NCBI GenBank assembly: GCA_977020255.1
Contig: CDROCS010004396.1
Span: 1 to 64,000 of the forward strand
Origin: Obrimoposthia wandeli
Taxonomy: Eukaryota
Direction of reading: 5' to 3'
DNA: 64,000 bases
Shown here: positions 3,672 to 24,115 of the stretch, piece after piece
Position numbering within the stretch: position 1 is the stretch's first letter
Layout: the number at the start of each line of letters is the position of its first letter
Notes under the pieces: model-generated
The model's input: the letters and a program-made list of their open reading frames with translations, nothing else
What the model was told of the DNA's origin: nothing
Database searches by the model: none
Translations under genes and position numbers: made by a program

Positions 3672-5582
3672 ATGTCTAATGCTTATGTTGAGAGCCTCAC
3701 TTTTTACCCTCTAAAATCTGGCGCCGGTATCAATTGTGATGCAGCACAGGTCGATAATGCTGGCATAGACGGCGACAGGCGCTTTATGCTCACAAAAATG
3801 GATGGCAGTTTTGTAACTGGTCGCACACACCCTAGGATTACGGCCATTAGTTGTGAATACATCGATAATAACTTAGTGCTAAAACACGCTAGTTGTGATG
3901 ACTTGGTATTGGAGCAGCATAATTTTTCTACGCAGTATTACCCTACAGAAGTTTGGGGCACTAAATTTTTGGGACAAGGATGTGGTTATGCTGTTGATCA
4001 ATGGATTAGCGCTATTTTTGATGAGCCGTTACGTATTTTATTTTTTGGTGACAACTCTAATAGAGAAGTAGAAGGCCATGAGACTCACGAAGTGGCGTTT
4101 GCCGATGGTTTCCCGCTACTTATCGCTAACACTCAATCACTTGATCACCTAAACCAACGCTTATTAGCACCAATCAGCATGGCGGCGTTTAGACCAAACA
4201 TTACCATTAATGGCGCATCTGCTTGGGCAGAAGACGAATGGGCGCAAATCAAAATTGGTGAAGTTGTTTTTGAATTACCAAAACCATGTAGTCGCTGTAT
4301 TTTTACAACAGTCGATCCAGCTACAGCAATCCTCGATAGCAAATCAGAGCCGGTGAAAACCTTAGCTACTTATCGTAAAACTGAACAGGGCGATGAGATC
4401 ATTTTTGGCGAAAACATGTTAGTTTTAAAGCCCGGAATAATTCGCATTGGTGATAAAGTTGAAATTTTGAAAACAAAGCCGAAACCGGGCTATGCTGATC
4501 ATTGGCAATTAAAAAACAGCCGCTTATCGCAGCAACTAACACTCGCTGCTAAAGAAATTTCAGCTAAAAACACTCTGTTGCGATGCGTGCAAATTATTGA
4601 TGAAACGGCAGATGTTAAAACGTTTAAATTTACGGCTGACCCTGTCACTAGATTCTCATACTTACCCGGGCAATTTGTAACGTTACAACCGCTCATTGAC
4701 GATCGAAAATACCCTCGTTGCTATACGCTTTCTTCAAGTCCATCAACACCTGACTTAATCTCCATCACCGTAAAGCGTGTTGAACAGGGCATCGTGTCTA
4801 ATTGGCTGCATGATAATGTGAAAGTAGGTTCCTCTATTGAAAGTAGTGCACGCAGCGGAGTGTTCCATTTATCAGATCGAGCTTTACCAAAAATCTTGTT
4901 GCTATCAGCAGGTTCCGGCATTACGCCGATGCTATCAATGGTACGTTACATTACAGATTTAGCACTAAACATTAACATTCACTTTCACCACAGTGCTAAA
5001 ACAGTAGATGATTTGATCTGTTTTAATGAGCTAAGGTTGATAGCCAGCCAAACAGATCATTTATCTTTATCTTGCAACTTTACTCGCCAAGCGGCAGTTG
5101 ATGATCACGCCATAGCGAATGTCAGCGGTAGATTAACCACAAATATGTTGCAAGGGTACTGTAGTGACGTTGCCGAGCGTGAAGTTTTTGTCTGCGGCCC
5201 AGAAGGGTTTATGAGCGAAGCACAACAAATGCTGACCCAGCTGGCATTGCCAGCAGCGCAATATCATCAAGAAAGTTTTGTAATTGATAGTGCAGTACAA
5301 AGTGAAGAAATTGAGCAAGGTCGTTATAAGTTGAAGTTCTTACAGAGCGGTTTGGAGGTTGAAGTTGATGGTGATCAATCTATTTTAGATGCAGCAGAGC
5401 AAATGGGTATATATCCTGATTATAGTTGTTTGGCGGGCATATGCGGCAGCTGTAACAGCCAATTGGTGAGCGGAAAAATTCATGCACCTGATGCAATGGC
5501 TTTAGATGAAGAAGATAAGGCAAATGGCGAGTTTTTACCTTGTTGTAGCTATGCTCGCTCTGACCTAGAAATTGACTTGTAA
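3672..5582 (+). CDS. ycbX: YcbX-type MOSC protein fused to FAD/NAD(P)H reductase and 2Fe-2S ferredoxin
   Basis: GDRRFML (MOSC_N), FADGFP, FRPNI, KPCSRC (MOSC); RCYTLSSSP, SAGSGITPM, VCGPEGFM (FNR-like); CLAGICGSC...PCC (2Fe-2S). Confidence 0.88.
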   Translation: MSNAYVESLTFYPLKSGAGINCDAAQVDNAGIDGDRRFMLTKMDGSFVTGRTHPRITAISCEYIDNNLVLKHASCDDLVLEQHNFSTQYYPTEVWGTKFLGQGCGYAVDQWISAIFDEPLRILFFGDNSNREVEGHETHEVAFADGFPLLIANTQSLDHLNQRLLAPISMAAFRPNITINGASAWAEDEWAQIKIGEVVFELPKPCSRCIFTTVDPATAILDSKSEPVKTLATYRKTEQGDEIIFGENMLVLKPGIIRIGDKVEILKTKPKPGYADHWQLKNSRLSQQLTLAAKEISAKNTLLRCVQIIDETADVKTFKFTADPVTRFSYLPGQFVTLQPLIDDRKYPRCYTLSSSPSTPDLISITVKRVEQGIVSNWLHDNVKVGSSIESSARSGVFHLSDRALPKILLLSAGSGITPMLSMVRYITDLALNINIHFHHSAKTVDDLICFNELRLIASQTDHLSLSCNFTRQAAVDDHAIANVSGRLTTNMLQGYCSDVAEREVFVCGPEGFMSEAQQMLTQLALPAAQYHQESFVIDSAVQSEEIEQGRYKLKFLQSGLEVEVDGDQSILDAAEQMGIYPDYSCLAGICGSCNSQLVSGKIHAPDAMALDEEDKANGEFLPCCSYARSDLEIDL

Positions 5583-5663
5583 TCTTTAGCTCAGATCTAA
5601 GATCAATAACAGGGGAGCTGTTAAAAAAACTCCCTTTAAAGCGCCATATGAAAAGAGATATAA

Positions 5664-6137
5664 ATGACACCTGCGATAAACAGTGCCAACAAAAATAAAA
5701 TAAACCATGTTATTCATGAATATGTGCATGATGTTAAAGCAACTTCCTATGGTATCGAAGCTGCTGAAAAATTAGCAGTGGATCCTAAACAAATATTCAA
5801 AACGTTAGTGGTTAGTTTAGATAATAAAAAGCTAGCGGTAGCAATTATTCCTGTTCTAGATCAACTTAGTATGAAGCGTGTTGCCAAAGCACTGGCCGTA
5901 AAAAAAGTGGTGATGGCAGATAAAATAGTAGTAGAGCGCTCTACAGGATACGTGCTCGGCGGCGTGAGTCCTTTAGGTCAAAAAAAGGCATTGCTAACCG
6001 TACTTGATCAATCAGCGCAATGTTTAGATACGCTATTTGTTAGCGCAGGTAAAAGAGGTTTAGAAATAGAACTTAAGCCAAGTGATTTAATTAAGCTCAC
6101 ACGTGCAAAGTACGCTTCCATTATTCAAACTGATTAA
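5664..6137 (+). CDS. ybaK: Cys-tRNA(Pro) deacylase
   Basis: IFKTLVV, TGYVLGGVSPLGQKK and SAGKRGLEIEL motifs. Confidence 0.92.
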   Translation: MTPAINSANKNKINHVIHEYVHDVKATSYGIEAAEKLAVDPKQIFKTLVVSLDNKKLAVAIIPVLDQLSMKRVAKALAVKKVVMADKIVVERSTGYVLGGVSPLGQKKALLTVLDQSAQCLDTLFVSAGKRGLEIELKPSDLIKLTRAKYASIIQTD

Positions 6138-6249
6138 GTATTCAATACCTTGATTTACTATGTACGCAATTGAACGGTAATTCACTTTAAATTTTAACCC
6201 TAATTATTTGAATTTTATATATAAAAACTTATATCCTTGTTGGGTCATT

Positions 6250-6868
6250 TTATCTGTTGGGTCTTTTTCTAGCAGGACGTTTAACTGAGTTATATTTTGC
6301 TGCTGATGTTTTTTTAGGAGTGGCTAAATAAACTACTTCTTTTCTGGTGTCGCCACTGGACAAGTTTCCAACGGTCCAGTTACCAATAGCATACCTTACT
6401 AATCTCAATGTAGGATAGCCTACCGCTGCAGTCATACGTCGAACTTGACGATTTTTTCCCTCTTTAATTTTGAGTTCTAGCCAAGAAGTTGGTTTATCTT
6501 TGCGTTCTCTTATTGGTGGGTTTCATGCAATATAGACTGTGGCCTTCAATGACTCGAGCTTGTGCAGGTTTAGTCTTGCCATCTTTTAACACAACCCCCT
6601 TAATGAGCTGGTTGAGAGCTTCTTGATTGATTAAACCTTCTACTTGTACCCAATAGGTTTTCTCTAACTTAAATGCAGGGTTTGCTAGCTGATGTTGAGT
6701 AGGTCCGTCATCTGTAAGAATCAACAATCCTTCAGAATCATAATCTAAACGCCCAGCAGGATAGAACCCTTTTTCACTGACAAAATCTCGCAGTGTTGTG
6801 CGCTCTCCATCATCAGTGAATTGGCTCAGTACTTGGAAAGGTTTATTGAGTAATATTAAATTGGCCAT
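6250..6868 (-). pseudogene. rluE: 23S rRNA pseudouridine synthase RluE, frameshifted in this sequence (may be a sequencing error)
   Basis: GRLDYDSEGLL catalytic motif in 6494-6868; [43 protein letters not shown] continues in another frame to 6250; indels near 6519-6546. Confidence 0.85.
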
Positions 6869-6938
6869 GAATTATCATTTTTTAGGTGGAAGATAAAAGC
6901 GAAGCAGCTTACTTGATACATATTAAAGCTGCAAACAT

Positions 6939-6974
6939 AAAAAATCCCGCGTTAAGTCAGTACTTAAGCGGGAT
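6939..6974 (-). terminator. Rho-independent terminator downstream of acnB
   Basis: ATCCCGC(G)TTAAGT/ACTTAAGCGGGAT stem followed by a T-run on the minus strand. Confidence 0.65.
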
Positions 6975-7086
6975 AGTATAATCTTATAATTGTTGCAGAT
7001 ATAGCATTGCTAGAATACTAAGCTATCAACCTTTCAATACTATTAAATCGTTGATGGCTTATTTTAAACGCAACAATTAACGCTAT

Positions 7087-17776: not shown

Positions 17777-19345
17777 TTGCTAGATATATCTTCAACAGAT
17801 GCTATATTGACAACAACGCAGGAGTCCAACTTGATTATTGACAACCTAACGGCATTGCGCCGACGATATAGTAAAAACAGCATTAAAATAGTTAACATTA
17901 TTATGATTTCTCTTTTTTCATGCTCATTAGCTGCAAATACGACAATAGTGTATACCTCAAACCAGCCAGATATTTTGCTAGAAAAAGAAGTGGCGCATTT
18001 TCCACAATTAGGCTCTTTACTAGAAAAGATAAGAGCTAATCAAAATAAAAACACCTTGTTTCTACACGGTGGAGATAGTTTTTCACCAAGCGCTATATCG
18101 CTGTTTGATAAGGCACGTAATATTATATCTTTAGCCAATATTATGGATGTGTCTCTTTACTCGGTCGGTAAAAGAGAGCTTAGTTATGATGTAGATGTTC
18201 TATCATTAAGGGCACATGATGCTCAGTTTCCAATCGTTAGTAGTAATATGACGGATGCACGTAGCAATACACCAATCGAGGGCTTATTCTCCGATTATCA
18301 ATTCAATATTGAAGGAAAATCAATTTCAGTAGCTTCTATTATTAGCCCTAGAACGTTAATAACTTATGCTCCAAAGTTTGCTCAAATCGAAAACCTTGAT
18401 AGTGTTTTAAAAAAAATTGTAGTCACGCAAGCCTCATCCGATATGAAAATCCTGATGACCGATCTAAAAAAGGAAGCGGCGGTAGCAATAGCGGATAAAT
18501 ACAGGTTTGATTTAATACTGGTTGCTATTGACGGTAAGGATGAAATTATCATCAAAAATGAAACAACTATTGTACTAGGTGGTGGCCAAGACGGTGATGC
18601 TGTTGTCATTGAGATAGATTATAGTGCAGCACAGAAAATATCTGCCCGCATTGAGCAGCTTAATGAATACCCTGCTAATGCTGAAATAGTAAGCTTTATT
18701 AAAAAGTATCAATTGCGCTTAGGTAGTTTATACAACGAGGAAATAGCTACGGCTGAAGATAAATTCACGACAGAAAAAAAACAGATCAGAACAAGAGAAA
18801 CCGCATTGGCAAACGTATTTGTAGATGCACTACATGAGCATGCAAATGCTGACATAGCCATTTTAAACAGCGGATCAATACGCAACTCTGCTATTTATCC
18901 TGTAGGTTACAAATTTACCCGTGGAGACATTCAACGAGAATTTCCTTTCGGCGGCTTTTATGTCGTAATAGAAATATCCGGAATAGAATTACTACAAATG
19001 ATGGAAAATTCAGTCAGTAGAATAGAGCATATTGATGGCCGGTTTCTCAATATTGCTGGCATGAAGGCTGTATACGATTCCTCAGCGCCTGTAGGTAGTC
19101 GATTAAAATCTCTAAATATTGCAGGAAAACCGGTAGTGAAAGACAAAATTTATACATTGGCGCTGCAAGATTTTTACTTAAAGGGAGGAGACGACTACCA
19201 TATGCTTAAAAACAAGGAGCCAGTCAATAATTTATTTAACAAAGGTAGAATTTGGAATATTGTTTCCGATTATTTTTCAACACATCAAACAATTCGAAAG
19301 CCCGCTATGAATAGAATGGTAGATCAGGCAAACGATGAGAACTAA
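17777..19345 (+). CDS. Exported 5'-nucleotidase-fold protein with degenerate metallophosphatase active site (start probably near 17855)
   Basis: GGDSFSPS, FPIVSSN, NSGSIR, FPFGG and DFYLKGGDDY match the UshA/CpdB fold; DxH, GNHE and GGHxH motifs are replaced; signal-like N-terminus. Confidence 0.85.
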   Translation: MLDISSTDAILTTTQESNLIIDNLTALRRRYSKNSIKIVNIIMISLFSCSLAANTTIVYTSNQPDILLEKEVAHFPQLGSLLEKIRANQNKNTLFLHGGDSFSPSAISLFDKARNIISLANIMDVSLYSVGKRELSYDVDVLSLRAHDAQFPIVSSNMTDARSNTPIEGLFSDYQFNIEGKSISVASIISPRTLITYAPKFAQIENLDSVLKKIVVTQASSDMKILMTDLKKEAAVAIADKYRFDLILVAIDGKDEIIIKNETTIVLGGGQDGDAVVIEIDYSAAQKISARIEQLNEYPANAEIVSFIKKYQLRLGSLYNEEIATAEDKFTTEKKQIRTRETALANVFVDALHEHANADIAILNSGSIRNSAIYPVGYKFTRGDIQREFPFGGFYVVIEISGIELLQMMENSVSRIEHIDGRFLNIAGMKAVYDSSAPVGSRLKSLNIAGKPVVKDKIYTLALQDFYLKGGDDYHMLKNKEPVNNLFNKGRIWNIVSDYFSTHQTIRKPAMNRMVDQANDEN

Positions 19346-21239
19346 TTGGAAAGATAGCATATCCGTTAGGATTAATGCCGGTATGTTGGTTATCCTTATC
19401 GCACTTTTTATGATTACGGCATTATCTTTTTGGATGATGGATAAATTTAGTTATTTATCTCTTGTTGTCTCTGAAAAGCAGGTTCCAGAATTATCTAAGT
19501 CATCAAATTTACATTTAGCAATCAAGAACGTACTGAGAAAAATGGATGCAATCCCTCACGTTAAAAGTAACGCTGAAAACAGGGTTATTGTGCAAGAGCT
19601 AAGTAATGAATTGCATCAAATCACACTCGCTATTGATAATATTTCCAAGGATAAATACAGTAAATTAATGCTAGCGATGACAAAAGAATTATTACCTATT
19701 GTTAATTCTTATAGCTTAGAAACGGATAGATTTCTTGATTCAAAACTAAATTTGCGTAAACAAATAATTGCATTGGATGATGCCTACATAACTAAGTTAA
19801 TGAATATACAAAGCCATCAAATGAGTGAAACAAGTGAGCTTAACCAGCTTTATACATCAGCACGCTCGCTTCCTGATTATCCAACTACATTTTTGTTTAA
19901 GCGTGCAAGAAGTAATATTATTAATAGAATCAAACAGTTAAAGCAAAAGGGTATTAACGACAAGCACTTTTTCGAAATTATTGATCACCACCAAGATGGG
20001 ATTATTGCCATACTTCAAGAGCAAGGCGATATATCGGTCAATTTATCAGTGTTAGAAACACAAACTAACGTCATTATTGAACAGCTTATCGCCATTTCCT
20101 TTGATAAAGTTAATGTTGTTAAAAACTTAGTAAAGGAAGGTACCCAAAAGCTAAATAATATTTCATCAAACTATACTAAAGGATTAGTCTCAATTGTTCT
20201 ATTCACCACTGTTTTTACCATTGCCTTCATATATTTGTTTCACCAAAGCGTCTCTAAAAGATTAATAGTTCTAGCTAGAAGTATCGGCACTAAAGAGAAC
20301 CGTAAAATGCTGACAAAAGAAACACGAGGGGGCTCTGAAATTAGCATCATTGCAAAATCTATCCTTAAGTATATGCTTAAGAATGAACAGCAAAAAAGTG
20401 AAATAAAAACCAACGCTAAGCAATTAATGCTGATCATTGAAAACTCCAATCAAGCAGTGATTATTTACAGCGGAGAGAAAATTGTTTACTGCAATCAATA
20501 TTCTGAGCAACTGCTAAATATAAACGCAATAAATAATACTGACATTATTTCTGAAAACCTACTCATCGCTATTAAAACTATGACCTACAAAGACAGGTTG
20601 CAGATAGATCAATGCTTTTTTCGTTTTTTCGCTACCGATATAGATTGGAATGGCAAAGCTAGTACACTTGCTTTGTTAATTGACATAACTGTTGATGTTA
20701 AAAAAGAAAATCAATTAATAAAAACACTTGAACAAGTTAAAGACGAGTCATTAACAGATACTTTAACAGGCCTCTATAACCGTAGAAAACTAAAGCCTTT
20801 TATTGATCAGCAGATAGGATTAAATTACGCATTAATTATGGCTGATATAGATTACTTTAAGGCCTTCAACGATTTTTACGGGCACGCGGAAGGTGATGTG
20901 TGCATTAAAAAAGTTGCAACGGCCATTAAACAAAGCTTGCGCACTGATGCTGATTTAGCGGTGCGCTATGGCGGAGAAGAATTTTTGGTATTATTAGTTA
21001 ATAGCACCATTACTCAGGCTGAGTTAGTAGCCAATAGAATACAGTCAATCATCCAGAAACTTGATATCAAACATGAAAAATCGACTCTTAACCATCTCTC
21101 TTTGAGTTTAGGTATCGCTCACTCAAGTGAAATTGAAAGCGGAGATTGGCAAGCTTTATTTGAAGTCGCTGATAAACGGTTATATCAAGCAAAAACAAAT
21201 GGCCGCGCTAGAATAGTCTCCTCTGAAGGGTTTAAATAA
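19335..21239 (+). CDS. Membrane diguanylate cyclase (TM-periplasmic-TM-HAMP-PAS-GGDEF)
   Basis: Two TM segments, DTLTGLYNRR, DIDYFKAFNDFYGHAEGD, RYGGEEF, ADKRLYQAK; overlaps the upstream gene by 11 nt. Confidence 0.93.
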   Translation: MRTNWKDSISVRINAGMLVILIALFMITALSFWMMDKFSYLSLVVSEKQVPELSKSSNLHLAIKNVLRKMDAIPHVKSNAENRVIVQELSNELHQITLAIDNISKDKYSKLMLAMTKELLPIVNSYSLETDRFLDSKLNLRKQIIALDDAYITKLMNIQSHQMSETSELNQLYTSARSLPDYPTTFLFKRARSNIINRIKQLKQKGINDKHFFEIIDHHQDGIIAILQEQGDISVNLSVLETQTNVIIEQLIAISFDKVNVVKNLVKEGTQKLNNISSNYTKGLVSIVLFTTVFTIAFIYLFHQSVSKRLIVLARSIGTKENRKMLTKETRGGSEISIIAKSILKYMLKNEQQKSEIKTNAKQLMLIIENSNQAVIIYSGEKIVYCNQYSEQLLNINAINNTDIISENLLIAIKTMTYKDRLQIDQCFFRFFATDIDWNGKASTLALLIDITVDVKKENQLIKTLEQVKDESLTDTLTGLYNRRKLKPFIDQQIGLNYALIMADIDYFKAFNDFYGHAEGDVCIKKVATAIKQSLRTDADLAVRYGGEEFLVLLVNSTITQAELVANRIQSIIQKLDIKHEKSTLNHLSLSLGIAHSSEIESGDWQALFEVADKRLYQAKTNGRARIVSSEGFK

Positions 21240-21336: not shown

Positions 21337-22617
21337 TTAAATACTTCTTTTAAAGCCGCTTCTTGCTCTATCCTTGATATTGCTTTGAATATAGTTTTTA
21401 TCTGTTGTTTCAGATGAAGCATGGCCCAATTCATCGGCAAGATGTTTAAGCGGTCTAGAGCCTGCATCCTCAGTTGCTCCAGTATGCCTTAGCCAATGCG
21501 TTGTTGCGGCCATCAGATAATTAGCATCTTCAATAAAGCCATCTTTTTGTAAAGCTTTTATCGCATAATCAAAGCTTTGCTCTACAATCCTGCGTACTTG
21601 GCGAGAGGTCATATTTCCAGATCCACGCAATTTATTTAGCATCGCAGAATCCTCATCAGGCGAGGGTAGAGCTGATAACTGTCGATAAGTACGGTAACGT
21701 TTTAGATACTCTAAATAGGCTTGCGGCACGGTAACAGAACGAATTTTGTTACCTTTTCCAAACACAGTGAGATACCAAAAATCGTCATTATCTTTACTGA
21801 AATCAGACATAGTAGGTCGCCACTTTGCATGTTCTGATAACTCAGAAACCCTTAAATATAAAGATTTCAATGTCACTATAATAAATAAATTACGCTCATA
21901 CTGACTATCGGCATCTGCCATTTCTTTGGTTGTGCCTAATACGTATTCCCATTGCAATTCACTCAGTGTATCCGGAGTTTTGCGCTGTACCTCTTTAACT
22001 AAATATGGACAGCTCTTTTTTACTACCGGCACAAAGTTTTTATCGCAAACTTCCTCCATTTGTGCGTGTTGATAAAGCACACTGATAGCTGTGAAGGTAG
22101 AAATTAATGATTCTTGAGAAGGTCTATATTGCTCAGGGTTTAAGTTGTGGTTTTGATTTTTCTTAACCATCGATTTTGGCAATTTAACCACAAAAGGACG
22201 CCATTTCTGGTTTGCTTGAAAGCTCCCTGATGTCAATTTAAAGCGCTGCTGCACGGAAAGTCCAATCCAAGCTTTATCGGGCTTCCAAACAAATTCAATA
22301 TAAGCTTCAATGTCTGAACGGTTAACATTAAAAATAGCTTTATTTCGCTCTTGCCAACAAAACAAACACCAACGTTCAATTTCATTGCGAAACCGAATAA
22401 ACGTACCATCTGATTTTCGACCCATAATATATAGAAAGTCCAGAACAAATATGAGTTCAGTTTGCGCAGTTTCCTGTAATTCATTTAAAGAACTAAGAAA
22501 AGATGCCACACTAGGATATTCAGTCGCAAGCTGTTGCTGCTTAAGCAAAGATCGCTGGTTTCTAATTTCAGTAAAGGTGTTTATTAAAGGCGTTATCTGT
22601 AACATATAAAAATCCAA
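21337..22617 (-). CDS. Tyrosine recombinase / site-specific integrase family protein
   Basis: LYLRVSEL (R), GKGNKIR (K), HWLRHT (HxxR), LGH...NY (H/Y). Confidence 0.88.
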   Translation of the reverse strand: MDFYMLQITPLINTFTEIRNQRSLLKQQQLATEYPSVASFLSSLNELQETAQTELIFVLDFLYIMGRKSDGTFIRFRNEIERWCLFCWQERNKAIFNVNRSDIEAYIEFVWKPDKAWIGLSVQQRFKLTSGSFQANQKWRPFVVKLPKSMVKKNQNHNLNPEQYRPSQESLISTFTAISVLYQHAQMEEVCDKNFVPVVKKSCPYLVKEVQRKTPDTLSELQWEYVLGTTKEMADADSQYERNLFIIVTLKSLYLRVSELSEHAKWRPTMSDFSKDNDDFWYLTVFGKGNKIRSVTVPQAYLEYLKRYRTYRQLSALPSPDEDSAMLNKLRGSGNMTSRQVRRIVEQSFDYAIKALQKDGFIEDANYLMAATTHWLRHTGATEDAGSRPLKHLADELGHASSETTDKNYIQSNIKDRARSGFKRSI

Positions 22618-22861
22618 ATATTCACATAATTATAAGCAAAACGCAGTATAACAACATATATCACTATGTCCAATACTTAAGAGTATTGGACATAGTATGG
22701 CTTATTATGCACCTTCTACATTATATTGTGTGGTTTCCAAAGTTTTTTGAGACTGTGGCCCAGTCTAAGACTGAAAATGAGACTGAAAAGATATGCATTA
22801 AATTAGAATGCCTTGCAACTTTTCAACTAGCAACCAGATCTAAGCTAAAAGTCAGATCTCT

Positions 22862-22963
22862 ATTTAACAAGCAATGCTCAAAGTTGAAGGTACTTTATCT
22901 ACGAATAACTGTGGAGCAATTTAAGTAACAACTTTAGTAGCCGACTACAGTTACTTGTTAAAT
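22862..22963. repeat. attC-like imperfect palindrome
   Basis: ATTTAACAAG...CTTGTTAAAT terminal IR (RYYYAAC/GTTRRRY), internal AAAGTTG/CAACTTT IR, 102 bp; lone GTTAGGC core on minus strand at 22966-22972. Confidence 0.4.
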
Positions 22964-22989
22964 GGGCCTAACGGGACTTCATTATCTAG

Positions 22990-23670
22990 TTACCATTCGG
23001 AAGATAATCTAATTATTGTATATTTATTACTCAAATGGATTGCACGGCCATTTACCAGCTTTGCTTCAATTTTCGAATCCATATTAAAGTCTGTATTCTC
23101 ACCACATAGATAAATCTTATATGTACCTGAGTAAACTTTACTAAGCTTTAAGTAATTTTTAATTTCATTAAGAAGCCAGCCTAATACCACTGTCTTTTTA
23201 CCATCCATCTAATTTATTCCATATTTGAGTTATTAGAATATGTTGGATTTACTAATTTTTGATACATTAGATATATGTTTATTAACTGCTTCTCTATATT
23301 TTCAGCTTTATAGCTTAGAATTTCTTCTTCTCCTAACTATCCCACAAATTAAAAATTACCCGAGCAGCAGCATCTAAATTGGATAGCTTTTTGTCGTAAA
23401 GATATTGATAGAGAAATGTCACATGAACACTTCAAGCCAATGCAATACACTGTAATCAACTGCGTTATTAAGTGATCCAATTCATCATATAGAGATTCTG
23501 ATGAATTCAGGAGTTATTTCATCTTTGAAATATATGCGCACAATTTGAAATGCATTATTCGATGTACGCAGTCTTGAAAACTTATAGATTGAAATTTTCA
23601 CTGCTGACAACCGAAAACTTAGTATCAGCTTCCAAGATATATTGGATAAAAAGTATATGACTTTATTCAA
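22990..23670 (-). pseudogene. Eroded AT-rich gene of unknown family
   Basis: Successive protein-like minus-strand fragments in different frames (RIYFKDEITPEF; FLYQYLYDKKLSNLDAAARVIFNLWDS; LGEEEILSYKAENIEKQLINIYL; MDGKKTVVLGWLLNEIK). Confidence 0.35.
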
Positions 23671-24115
23671 TGCAACCTGGTATAAGATGTACTAATGGGA
23701 GAAACAGTTTCTTACGCAGAAATACAGAAGACTCAATAACTAGCGCCCTATTCAATCGAGCTGAATTGAATCGTTACCTTGATAGACGAAACTTTATGGT
23801 ACAGAGGTGCCATATAAAAAATTAGTCAGATTTTTAGTATCAAATTCAATGTAATAGATTGGCGAATTTTAAGTGAATTTAATGTTACCATAAATAAAAT
23901 AATATTTAAATTTCAATAGCTTAAGTTAATAACCGGATTTTAAATAGTATTTAATTATTTCCATATATTAGACTCATCTAGTGAATACACTAAATCATTG
24001 AGCATATAATATTTTAGTCTCAAAACTATAGACAGAAATTTCCTAATCCTTCCTAATCTCAAACCCTCAAAAAAGAGGTATTTTCGTTCGAGTAAGTAAC
24101 AACAAAACTATTGGC

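Follow-up and report, generated by a model that had tools for sequence, protein, structure and literature searches.

The stretch analysed here, referred to below as the window, comprises 64,000 nucleotides (nt) of the assembly of Obrimoposthia wandeli (GCA_977020255.1; 1.35 Gb in 6912 contigs), namely positions 1 to 64,000 of contig CDROCS010004396.1 (C4396) read on the forward strand. It contains two tandem open reading frames (ORFs) on the + strand, ORF A (17777..19345) and ORF B (19335..21239), which share the 11 nt from 19335 to 19345 between the stop of the former and the start of the latter, exactly as stated by an initial annotation that had been made from the letters of the sequence without database searches. 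This overlap suggests that the two genes are translationally coupled. Gene A is likely to begin at the TTG codon at 17831 rather than at 17777, because an AGGAG element precedes this codon and homologous proteins (for example, P0002) begin at the same place. Gene B codes for a membrane diguanylate cyclase, and gene A for a protein with the predicted fold of a 5'-nucleotidase from which the catalytic centre has been lost. Given that protein A is paired and has co-evolved with a TorS-like sensor, and has lost its metal site while keeping its substrate pocket, its most likely role is that of a receptor for a periplasmic ligand, of a kind not described before. The features of the locus are collected in Table 1.

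Table 1. Features of the A-B locus, with positions counted from the first letter of the window
Feature	Position	Strand	Basis or remark
AGGAG, Shine-Dalgarno-like	17820..17824	+	6 nt ahead of probable TTG start of gene A; sequence read
Gene A, putatively exported pseudo-5'-nucleotidase, 504 amino acids (aa)	17831..19345	+	longest ORF from 17777
Predicted Sec signal peptide of A, aa 1-34 (...SLFSCSLA/ANTT, presumed cleavage site)	17831..17932	+	sequence
Degenerate metallophosphatase-like N-domain of A, aa 35-295	17933..18715	+	
Former motif, TSNQPD	17954-17971		
Former motif, GGDSFSP	18068-18088		
Former motif, GKRE	18167-18178		
Former motif, MTDL	18455-18466		
Former motif, AIDGK	18524-18538		
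5_nucleotid_C domain of A, aa 305-460	18743..19210	+	Pfam E 1.3e-32
11-nt overlap, A stop / B ATG	19335..19345	+	sequence
Gene B, membrane diguanylate cyclase, 634 aa	19335..21239	+	
First transmembrane (TM) segment of B, aa 17-35	19383..19439	+	hydropathy; helix in AlphaFold2 (AF2) model
Periplasmic sensor domain of B, aa 36-283 (248 aa), all-helical	19440..20183	+	AF2 model
Second TM segment of B, aa 284-302	20184..20240	+	hydropathy
Cytoplasmic linker and PAS-like region of B	20241..20750	+	Pfam
GGDEF domain of B, aa 473-625	20751..21209	+	Pfam, TIGR00254

The sole Pfam match in protein A is to the C-terminal 5_nucleotid_C domain; no Metallophos domain was recovered by Pfam in A, and the excised N-domain did not match any Pfam family even at E<=10. 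An AF2 model of A, built on a 42-sequence alignment with a mean confidence (pLDDT) of 89.5, nevertheless predicts the two-domain fold of the 5'-nucleotidases, with Foldseek matches that extend over both domains to 2z1a, CD73, 3ivd and UshA (E 1e-40 to 1e-34), and it is closer to the closed structures of these enzymes (template modelling scores of 0.73-0.79) than to the open ones (0.52-0.56). To trace the fate of the catalytic motifs we aligned A with L005, a canonical gene of the UshA type in this assembly, and with other canonical relatives. In this alignment motif I, LHTNDNHG in the canonical sequence, is replaced by VYTSNQPD; the GNHE motif by a divergent version (IGNHEFDN to VGKRELSY), the region of the motif IV histidine likewise (ATTHMGHY to LMTDLKKE), and the GGH motif by ILVAIDGK in place of IIGGHSQD. 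The GD motif (SGGDINTG to HGGDSFSP) has kept its aspartate, D82. A phmmer search against the PDB independently aligned the GKRE of A with the GNHE of 3ivd. Thus, the dimetal ligands contributed by DxH, GD, GNH(E), the motif IV histidine and GH(x)H/Q are gone from A with the exception of D82, and the former ligand positions are now occupied by N44, P46, K114, D211 and I233. The catalytic His-Asp dyad of the GNHEFD motif is absent too, R115 occupying the position of the histidine and S118 that of the aspartate. With all catalytic features gone, A falls outside the 5'-nucleotidase enzymes, and the label 'bifunctional metallophosphatase/5'-nucleotidase' under which such proteins are currently annotated is, as a statement about enzymatic activity, almost certainly incorrect. 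The initial annotation had read the loss of DxH, GNHE, the later histidine and GGHxH, and the survival of GD, directly from the sequence, and had proposed an alignment with UshA as a check; that alignment agrees with it motif by motif, and the losses hold throughout the family described below.

The N-terminus of A, judged from its sequence, is a probable Sec signal peptide, and hydrophobic N-termini are found family-wide; the protein would accordingly be exported and the signal peptide cleaved. Lipoprotein anchoring through the cysteine of the LFSC segment in the signal peptide was considered, but a cleaved Sec signal is preferred because family members do not consistently have this cysteine and because the lipobox departs from the usual pattern.

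In contrast to the metal centre of the N-domain, the substrate pocket of the C-terminal domain is preserved. The motifs IRTRET, NSGSIR, FPFGG and DFYLKGGDDY (19169-19198), whose retention had been pointed out in the initial annotation, are all four present, and the six pocket residues of A (R320, N346, R351, F373, F448 and D454) are all kept. Across the degenerate relatives of A the corresponding positions are retained in nearly every sequence: R320 in 133/135, N346 in 132/135, R351 in 131/135, F or Y at position 373 in 128/135, F or Y at position 448 in 133/135 and D454 in 129/135. This amounts to 95-99% for the six residues, which is on a par with their retention in 66 canonical sequences. 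By motif alignment their counterparts in CD73 are R354, N390, R395, F417, F500 and D506; we take N390 to be a member of the CD73 pocket, with N346 of A as its counterpart. In CD73 the ribose is bound by D506 and, together with the phosphate, by R354 and R395, and the adenine is stacked by F417 and F500 (PMC7508162).

To delineate the family we scanned one genome per species, which yielded 65 loci from Oceanospirillaceae/Nitrincolaceae, Marinomonas, Maribrevibacterium, Alteromonas, Glaciecola, Paraglaciecola, Agaribacter, Pseudoalteromonas, Psychromonas, Neptunicella, Novispirillum, Spirochaetia and a metagenome-assembled genome (MAG) of the Desulfobacterales. Five low-scoring loci from Bacilli and an actinobacterium (L070, L071, L073, L078 and L079), which look like larger enzymes of other kinds, were set apart. 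Forty-two degenerate domains from the loci, combined with 93 from a search of 1.84 billion representative sequences, gave a degenerate set of 135. None of the 42 family members from the loci has DxH, GNHE, the motif IV histidine or GGH, and in the members from Alteromonadales and Psychromonas the GD aspartate has disappeared as well. The 150 best-scoring of the 1.84 billion representatives fell into two groups by how many of the seven catalytic residues they keep: 93 domains have 0-2 and 63 have 4-7, a bimodal distribution. The substitutions themselves recur: the position of the catalytic histidine is occupied by arginine in 106 of the 135 degenerate rows and that of the metal-binding asparagine by lysine in 80. 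In a FastTree phylogeny rooted on a UshA-like sequence, 133/135 degenerate rows formed a single clade, which comprises at least about 90 clusters at 50% identity and spans Gamma- and Alphaproteobacteria, Spirochaetota and Desulfobacterales. Since nearly all degenerate rows share one clade, this topology, allowing for the fast tree method, fits a scenario in which the catalytic centre was lost once and anciently. The ratio of nonsynonymous to synonymous substitution (dN/dS) between the window and a 92%-identical copy on contig C2735 was 0.14 for A and 0.11 for B, and 0.095 for the degenerate N-domain of A taken alone; this purifying selection, at a dN/dS of about 0.1, indicates that gene A is being maintained and is not decaying. 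As regards the sequences outside the degenerate clade, the nearest canonical relatives (P0026-P0035 and many representatives) have D-x-Y or D-x-D in motif I and keep all other metal ligands, and a precomputed Pfam Metallophos match is still present in P0026, P0027 and P0030-P0035. The top-scoring representative, P0036, is a predicted protein of 2537 aa with ten tandem 5_nucleotid_C domains; it could be either a genuine repeat protein or a product of misassembly.

As for the genomic context of this family, in all 62 loci with downstream DNA the gene that follows encodes a single family of periplasmic sensor domains. This includes all 58 family loci of the species scan with downstream DNA, where the next gene lies on the same strand and codes for a TM segment, about 250-275 periplasmic residues and a second TM segment; the distance between A and its partner is -41 to +45 nt in 57 of these 58 loci, the start being uncertain in the remaining one (L045). 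Overlaps of start and stop occur in many loci, and both -4 and -11 nt overlaps are seen among related ones. The periplasmic stretches of the partners coalesced into one profile family within three iterations, with 54/54 partners in a single hidden Markov model (HMM) family. The synteny across genomes that the initial annotation had suggested examining is therefore conserved, and the linkage is strict and ancient, with congruent trees for the two components (see below), and the genes flanking the pair are unrelated in Marinomonas sargassi, Alginatibacterium sediminis and an Osedax symbiont. Five whole genomes each contain exactly one A and one strongly matching B, together with a few much weaker HBM-like sensors that have no adjacent A. 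Within the Obrimoposthia assembly the pair is present on four contigs (C4396, C2735, C3321 and C4798, at 100, 92, 61 and 30% identity), and the nearest named relatives of both genes come from an Oceanospirillaceae MAG, at 83% identity, and from the Osedax symbiont Rs1, at 60%. As there are at least four different copies of the pair, the assembly includes contigs of several related bacteria, which are probably symbionts or associates of the sequenced host. Two loci have peculiarities of their own: at L046 (Alteromonas gracilis J4, 5454-7080) the cyclase is split into two overlapping ORFs of 425 and 132 aa, with the GGDEF domain in the second, which is a frameshift or sequencing error, and L059, binned as Flavobacteriales, is nearly identical to L058 from a Paraglaciecola MAG (branch lengths of 0.004-0.006 in the A tree) and is probably mis-binned.

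Protein B had been described as a cyclase with two TM segments around a periplasmic domain, followed by HAMP, PAS and GGEEF. The TM segments, the periplasmic domain and the GGEEF motif (aa 546-550, 20970-20984) stand, and the active-site motif is intact; the GGDEF domain is recovered with high significance by both PF00990 (E 1.8e-41, 142 bits against a cut-off of 23.8) and TIGR00254 (E 2.8e-44, 150.8 bits). The PAS match is weak (PAS_8, aa 365-400, E 0.002) and falls under the Pfam cut-off, and the HAMP domain is not supported, as Pfam gave no HAMP match in B of the window even at E<=10 on the excised linker; weak HAMP matches do appear in more distant partners. Many diguanylate cyclases, though not all, have an allosteric I-site with the signature RxxD, expected five residues upstream of GGDEF as in PleD. 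In B this site is non-canonical (RTDADLAVRYGGEEF), with RTDAD for RxxD and the arginine one position out of register.

An AF2 model of residues 1-320 of B (pLDDT 87.3) is all-helical. In Foldseek searches with the sensor model the best match was the TorS sensor (3i9y), albeit a weak one (E 9e-3). Exhaustive structural alignment with VIA-align yielded a Z-score of 17.4 over 212 residues (root-mean-square deviation 2.5) for the ligand-binding domain of McpS (2yfa), 16.6 over 211 residues for TorS (3i9w), and 16.1 for TorS in its complex with TorT (3o1h). These matches score slightly above single four-helix bundles and cover the whole domain. The model therefore points to a double four-helix bundle of the HBM/TorS type as the probable structure of the periplasmic domain, an assignment that concerns fold class and not homology, as helical bundles reach high scores easily.

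The relationship between A and its partner is further illuminated by their phylogenies. All nine clades of the A tree reappeared in the tree of the sensor domains with as few changes as are possible, and the patristic distances of the two trees are strongly correlated (Mantel r 0.92, against a permutation maximum of 0.24). The match extends to paralogous pairs, of which there are three types in Marinomonas and two in Paraglaciecola. The cytoplasmic output module varies: GGDEF is found in most partners, and hybrid histidine kinases in L029 (Desulfobacterales), L037 and L072 (Novispirillum), L054, P0114 and P0054. The Desulfobacterales kinase clusters with Spirochaete cyclases in the A tree and the sensor tree alike. 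A further type of linkage is provided by gene fusions. P0096 and P0109 combine a signal peptide, the degenerate domain, SBP_bac_3 domains, a TM segment, PAS and SpoIIE, and their genes adjoin those for SiaC; by its predicted domain composition this architecture is that of a SiaA-like PP2C sensor phosphatase, in which the dead nucleotidase domain is part of the extracytoplasmic sensory region. A third, partial fusion protein (P0122) has the degenerate domain followed by SBP_bac_3 only. These SiaA-like proteins (P0096, P0109 and P0122; locus L080, 3001-7254) carry two or three SBP_bac_3 domains beside the dead domain, and the fused degenerate domains fall within the same degenerate clade as the free-standing proteins. 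The conserved unit is thus the pseudo-nucleotidase together with the periplasmic sensor domain, and not the link to the synthesis of cyclic di-GMP (c-di-GMP).

Taken together, these observations make it probable, in our estimation, that A is a periplasmic pseudoenzyme that functions as a soluble ligand-binding co-receptor for B; the evidence is comparative and structural, in the form of alignments and models, and from it we infer the contact between A and B, the ligand and the direction of the effect. Under this proposal, the ligand bound by A would be a nucleoside or nucleotide, or else a phosphorylated ribosyl compound related to these, and the two domains of A would shut around it. K114 and R115, which lie at the former sites of the metal-binding asparagine and the catalytic histidine, could contact a phosphate. 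A would then dock on the TorS/HBM-like four-helix-bundle domain that B exposes to the periplasm, and this docking would alter transmembrane signalling, the activity of the GGDEF domain and ultimately the level of c-di-GMP. The initial annotation had arrived at a pseudoenzyme receptor that regulates c-di-GMP synthesis: the dead centre, the pocket and the linkage uphold the first part of this idea, and the restriction to c-di-GMP proves too narrow because the outputs include hybrid histidine kinases and SiaA-like PP2C phosphatases. More tentatively, and with a confidence that falls a little short of even, we propose that the entire degenerate clade represents an unrecognised extracytoplasmic module for the reception of nucleosides or nucleotides, derived on a single occasion from an enzyme and deployed either as a subunit or in fused form with three outputs, namely GGDEF cyclases, hybrid histidine kinases and SiaA-type PP2C phosphatases. 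If this were true, marine and host-associated bacteria would possess in this module a purinergic-like sense with which they could perceive lysed cells or host tissue, and which would control attachment and biofilm formation.

Several points weigh against a co-receptor role for A. The equivalence of its residues with those of CD73 comes from a motif alignment and not from a solved structure of A; simple co-inheritance of one operon would yield congruent trees too; one family member (P0130, at L083) has no adjacent sensor gene; and, by analogy with HBM domains such as McpS, which bind small ligands alone, B may sense its signal without A. Co-folding of mature A (aa 35-504) with residues 36-283 of B gave a score of 0.00 in two runs without controls, which speaks neither for nor against binding. 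One alternative is that B is the direct sensor and A shapes the periplasmic signal without touching B, by sequestering or buffering a nucleoside or nucleotide or through some residual metal-independent activity. It gains some plausibility from McpS, the best structural match of the B domain, which binds malate directly, from the substrate pocket that A retains, and from the weaker HBM-like sensors that occur without an adjacent A in the same genomes. However, the residues for the known catalysis are all gone from A, and the paralog-specific co-diversification of A with the sensor domain, along with the existence of SiaA-like proteins whose sensory part contains the dead domain in covalent linkage, argues for action within one receptor complex; hence we consider direct sensing by B to be quite improbable.

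It is also conceivable, though unlikely, that A regulates the sensor from the periplasm without any ligand, in the style of YfiR acting on the cyclase YfiN, with the pocket being kept for structural reasons or for contact with the partner; A would in this case repress or activate the sensor constitutively until envelope or redox stress led to the titration, degradation or release of A. Any obligate partner would fit the strict pairing and co-diversification, and the new N-domain motifs TSNQPD, GKRE and MTDL, which are conserved in the Oceanospirillaceae clade, could mark a protein interface. These motifs are, however, not conserved in the wider family, and the persistence of the six pocket residues at 95-99% across clades that are only 26-30% identical is hard to account for without a nucleoside-type ligand. 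Lastly, A and B might merely be co-transcribed and have unrelated functions, with A serving, for instance, as a nucleoside scavenger for a transporter encoded elsewhere. Gene adjacency alone is indeed no proof of interaction, and the lone P0130 would agree with such an arrangement; but it would leave unexplained the pairing in 62/62 loci from four phyla with differing flanks, the start/stop overlaps in many of them, the congruence of the trees despite the swapped output domain, and the domain fusions, and transporter genes are not conserved nearby. This last scenario is accordingly very hard to credit, and a receptor function of A in conjunction with B remains the interpretation that we favour.

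The neighbours of the pair in the window are ordinary bacterial genes, coding for an acyl-CoA-type ligase, a transglycosylase, GFA and AIM24 proteins, a tyrosine recombinase and a LysR regulator. The tyrosine recombinase (Phage_integrase) gene lies immediately 3' of the cyclase gene on the opposite strand (21337-22617, -), and an AT-rich stretch with a G+C fraction of about 0.30 (22600-24000) lies beyond it. On contigs C2735 and C3321 an ORF of similar size (426 and 422 aa, respectively) adjoins the pair, and locus L014 of the Osedax symbiont has a Phage_integrase gene close to its pair. No tRNA genes were found in the window, and scans for promoters and terminators returned fewer sites than in shuffled sequence and were uninformative. 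Of the sequencing runs on record, a single one of unrecorded type contains the locus, and no run recorded as RNA does. The gene for P0130, for its part, is preceded by genes for an extracytoplasmic function (ECF) sigma factor and a 259-aa protein of unknown function, and followed by YceI, cytochrome b561 and YceI genes.

Nothing relevant emerged from searches of the literature for a co-sensor that resembles a nucleotidase and acts on c-di-GMP enzymes, an absence that is no proof of unpublished status, and in reviews of c-di-GMP sensing and of binding-protein signalling the word 'nucleotidase' is nowhere mentioned. To our knowledge, only a handful of sensors that depend on periplasmic binding proteins have been characterised, and nearly all of these employ classical solute-binding-protein folds. 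PruR, the periplasmic partner of DcpA, has a fold of the enzyme type. The comparison with TorT/TorS, which had been drawn at the outset, is apt, as the sensor domain of B has the predicted TorS/HBM fold, and it can be carried further: in both systems a two-lobed periplasmic protein is encoded beside a membrane sensor with a double four-helix bundle (the model of B aligns with TorS at Z 16.1-16.6 over about 210 residues), and some partners in our family are hybrid histidine kinases, as is TorS, which is itself listed as HBM-like in a review of solute-binding proteins (PMC8050422). Unlike TorT, which belongs to the Peripla_BP_1 fold, A has a 5'-nucleotidase fold, and this difference in the binding protein places the A-B pair outside the TorT/TorS family; moreover, the pair in the window has a GGDEF cyclase as its output, and the complex of A with the sensor is putative. 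The polyamine-sensing pair NspS/MbaA resembles A-B in that the output of a membrane c-di-GMP enzyme is governed by a ligand-binding protein of the periplasm whose gene adjoins that of the enzyme (PMC8967002, PMC8050422), but NspS is a classical SBP_bac_8 protein and MbaA combines a dCache-like sensor with GGDEF-EAL. Likewise, PruR is a pterin-binding periplasmic protein that controls a membrane c-di-GMP enzyme (PMC11194511), and the PruR/DcpA system differs from the A-B pair in fold, ligand and sensor domain. Sensing of extracellular ATP that modulates c-di-GMP has been described in bacteria for PA2072 (PMC12625894), which is a one-component CHASE4 receptor without a separate binding protein.

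From the enzymes of the UshA, CD73 and 3ivd type, with which it shares the two-domain fold and the nucleoside/phosphate pocket of the C-terminal domain, the A family is set apart by the absence of the dimetal ligands (the GD aspartate being kept in some members) and of the His-Asp dyad, and by a genomic partner that is a signalling protein. What is new is therefore the fold of the putative receptor subunit, and what was already known, from TorT/TorS, NspS/MbaA and PruR/DcpA, is the signalling logic. An enzyme fold would thus have been turned into a receptor subunit that is found in at least four phyla with one sensor-domain family and several outputs. This makes the pair a testable candidate for a system with which copiotrophic marine bacteria and symbionts, among them the Oceanospirillaceae including the Osedax symbionts, Marinomonas, Alteromonadaceae and Psychromonas, could sense extracellular nucleosides or nucleotides and relay them to c-di-GMP or phosphorelay signalling.

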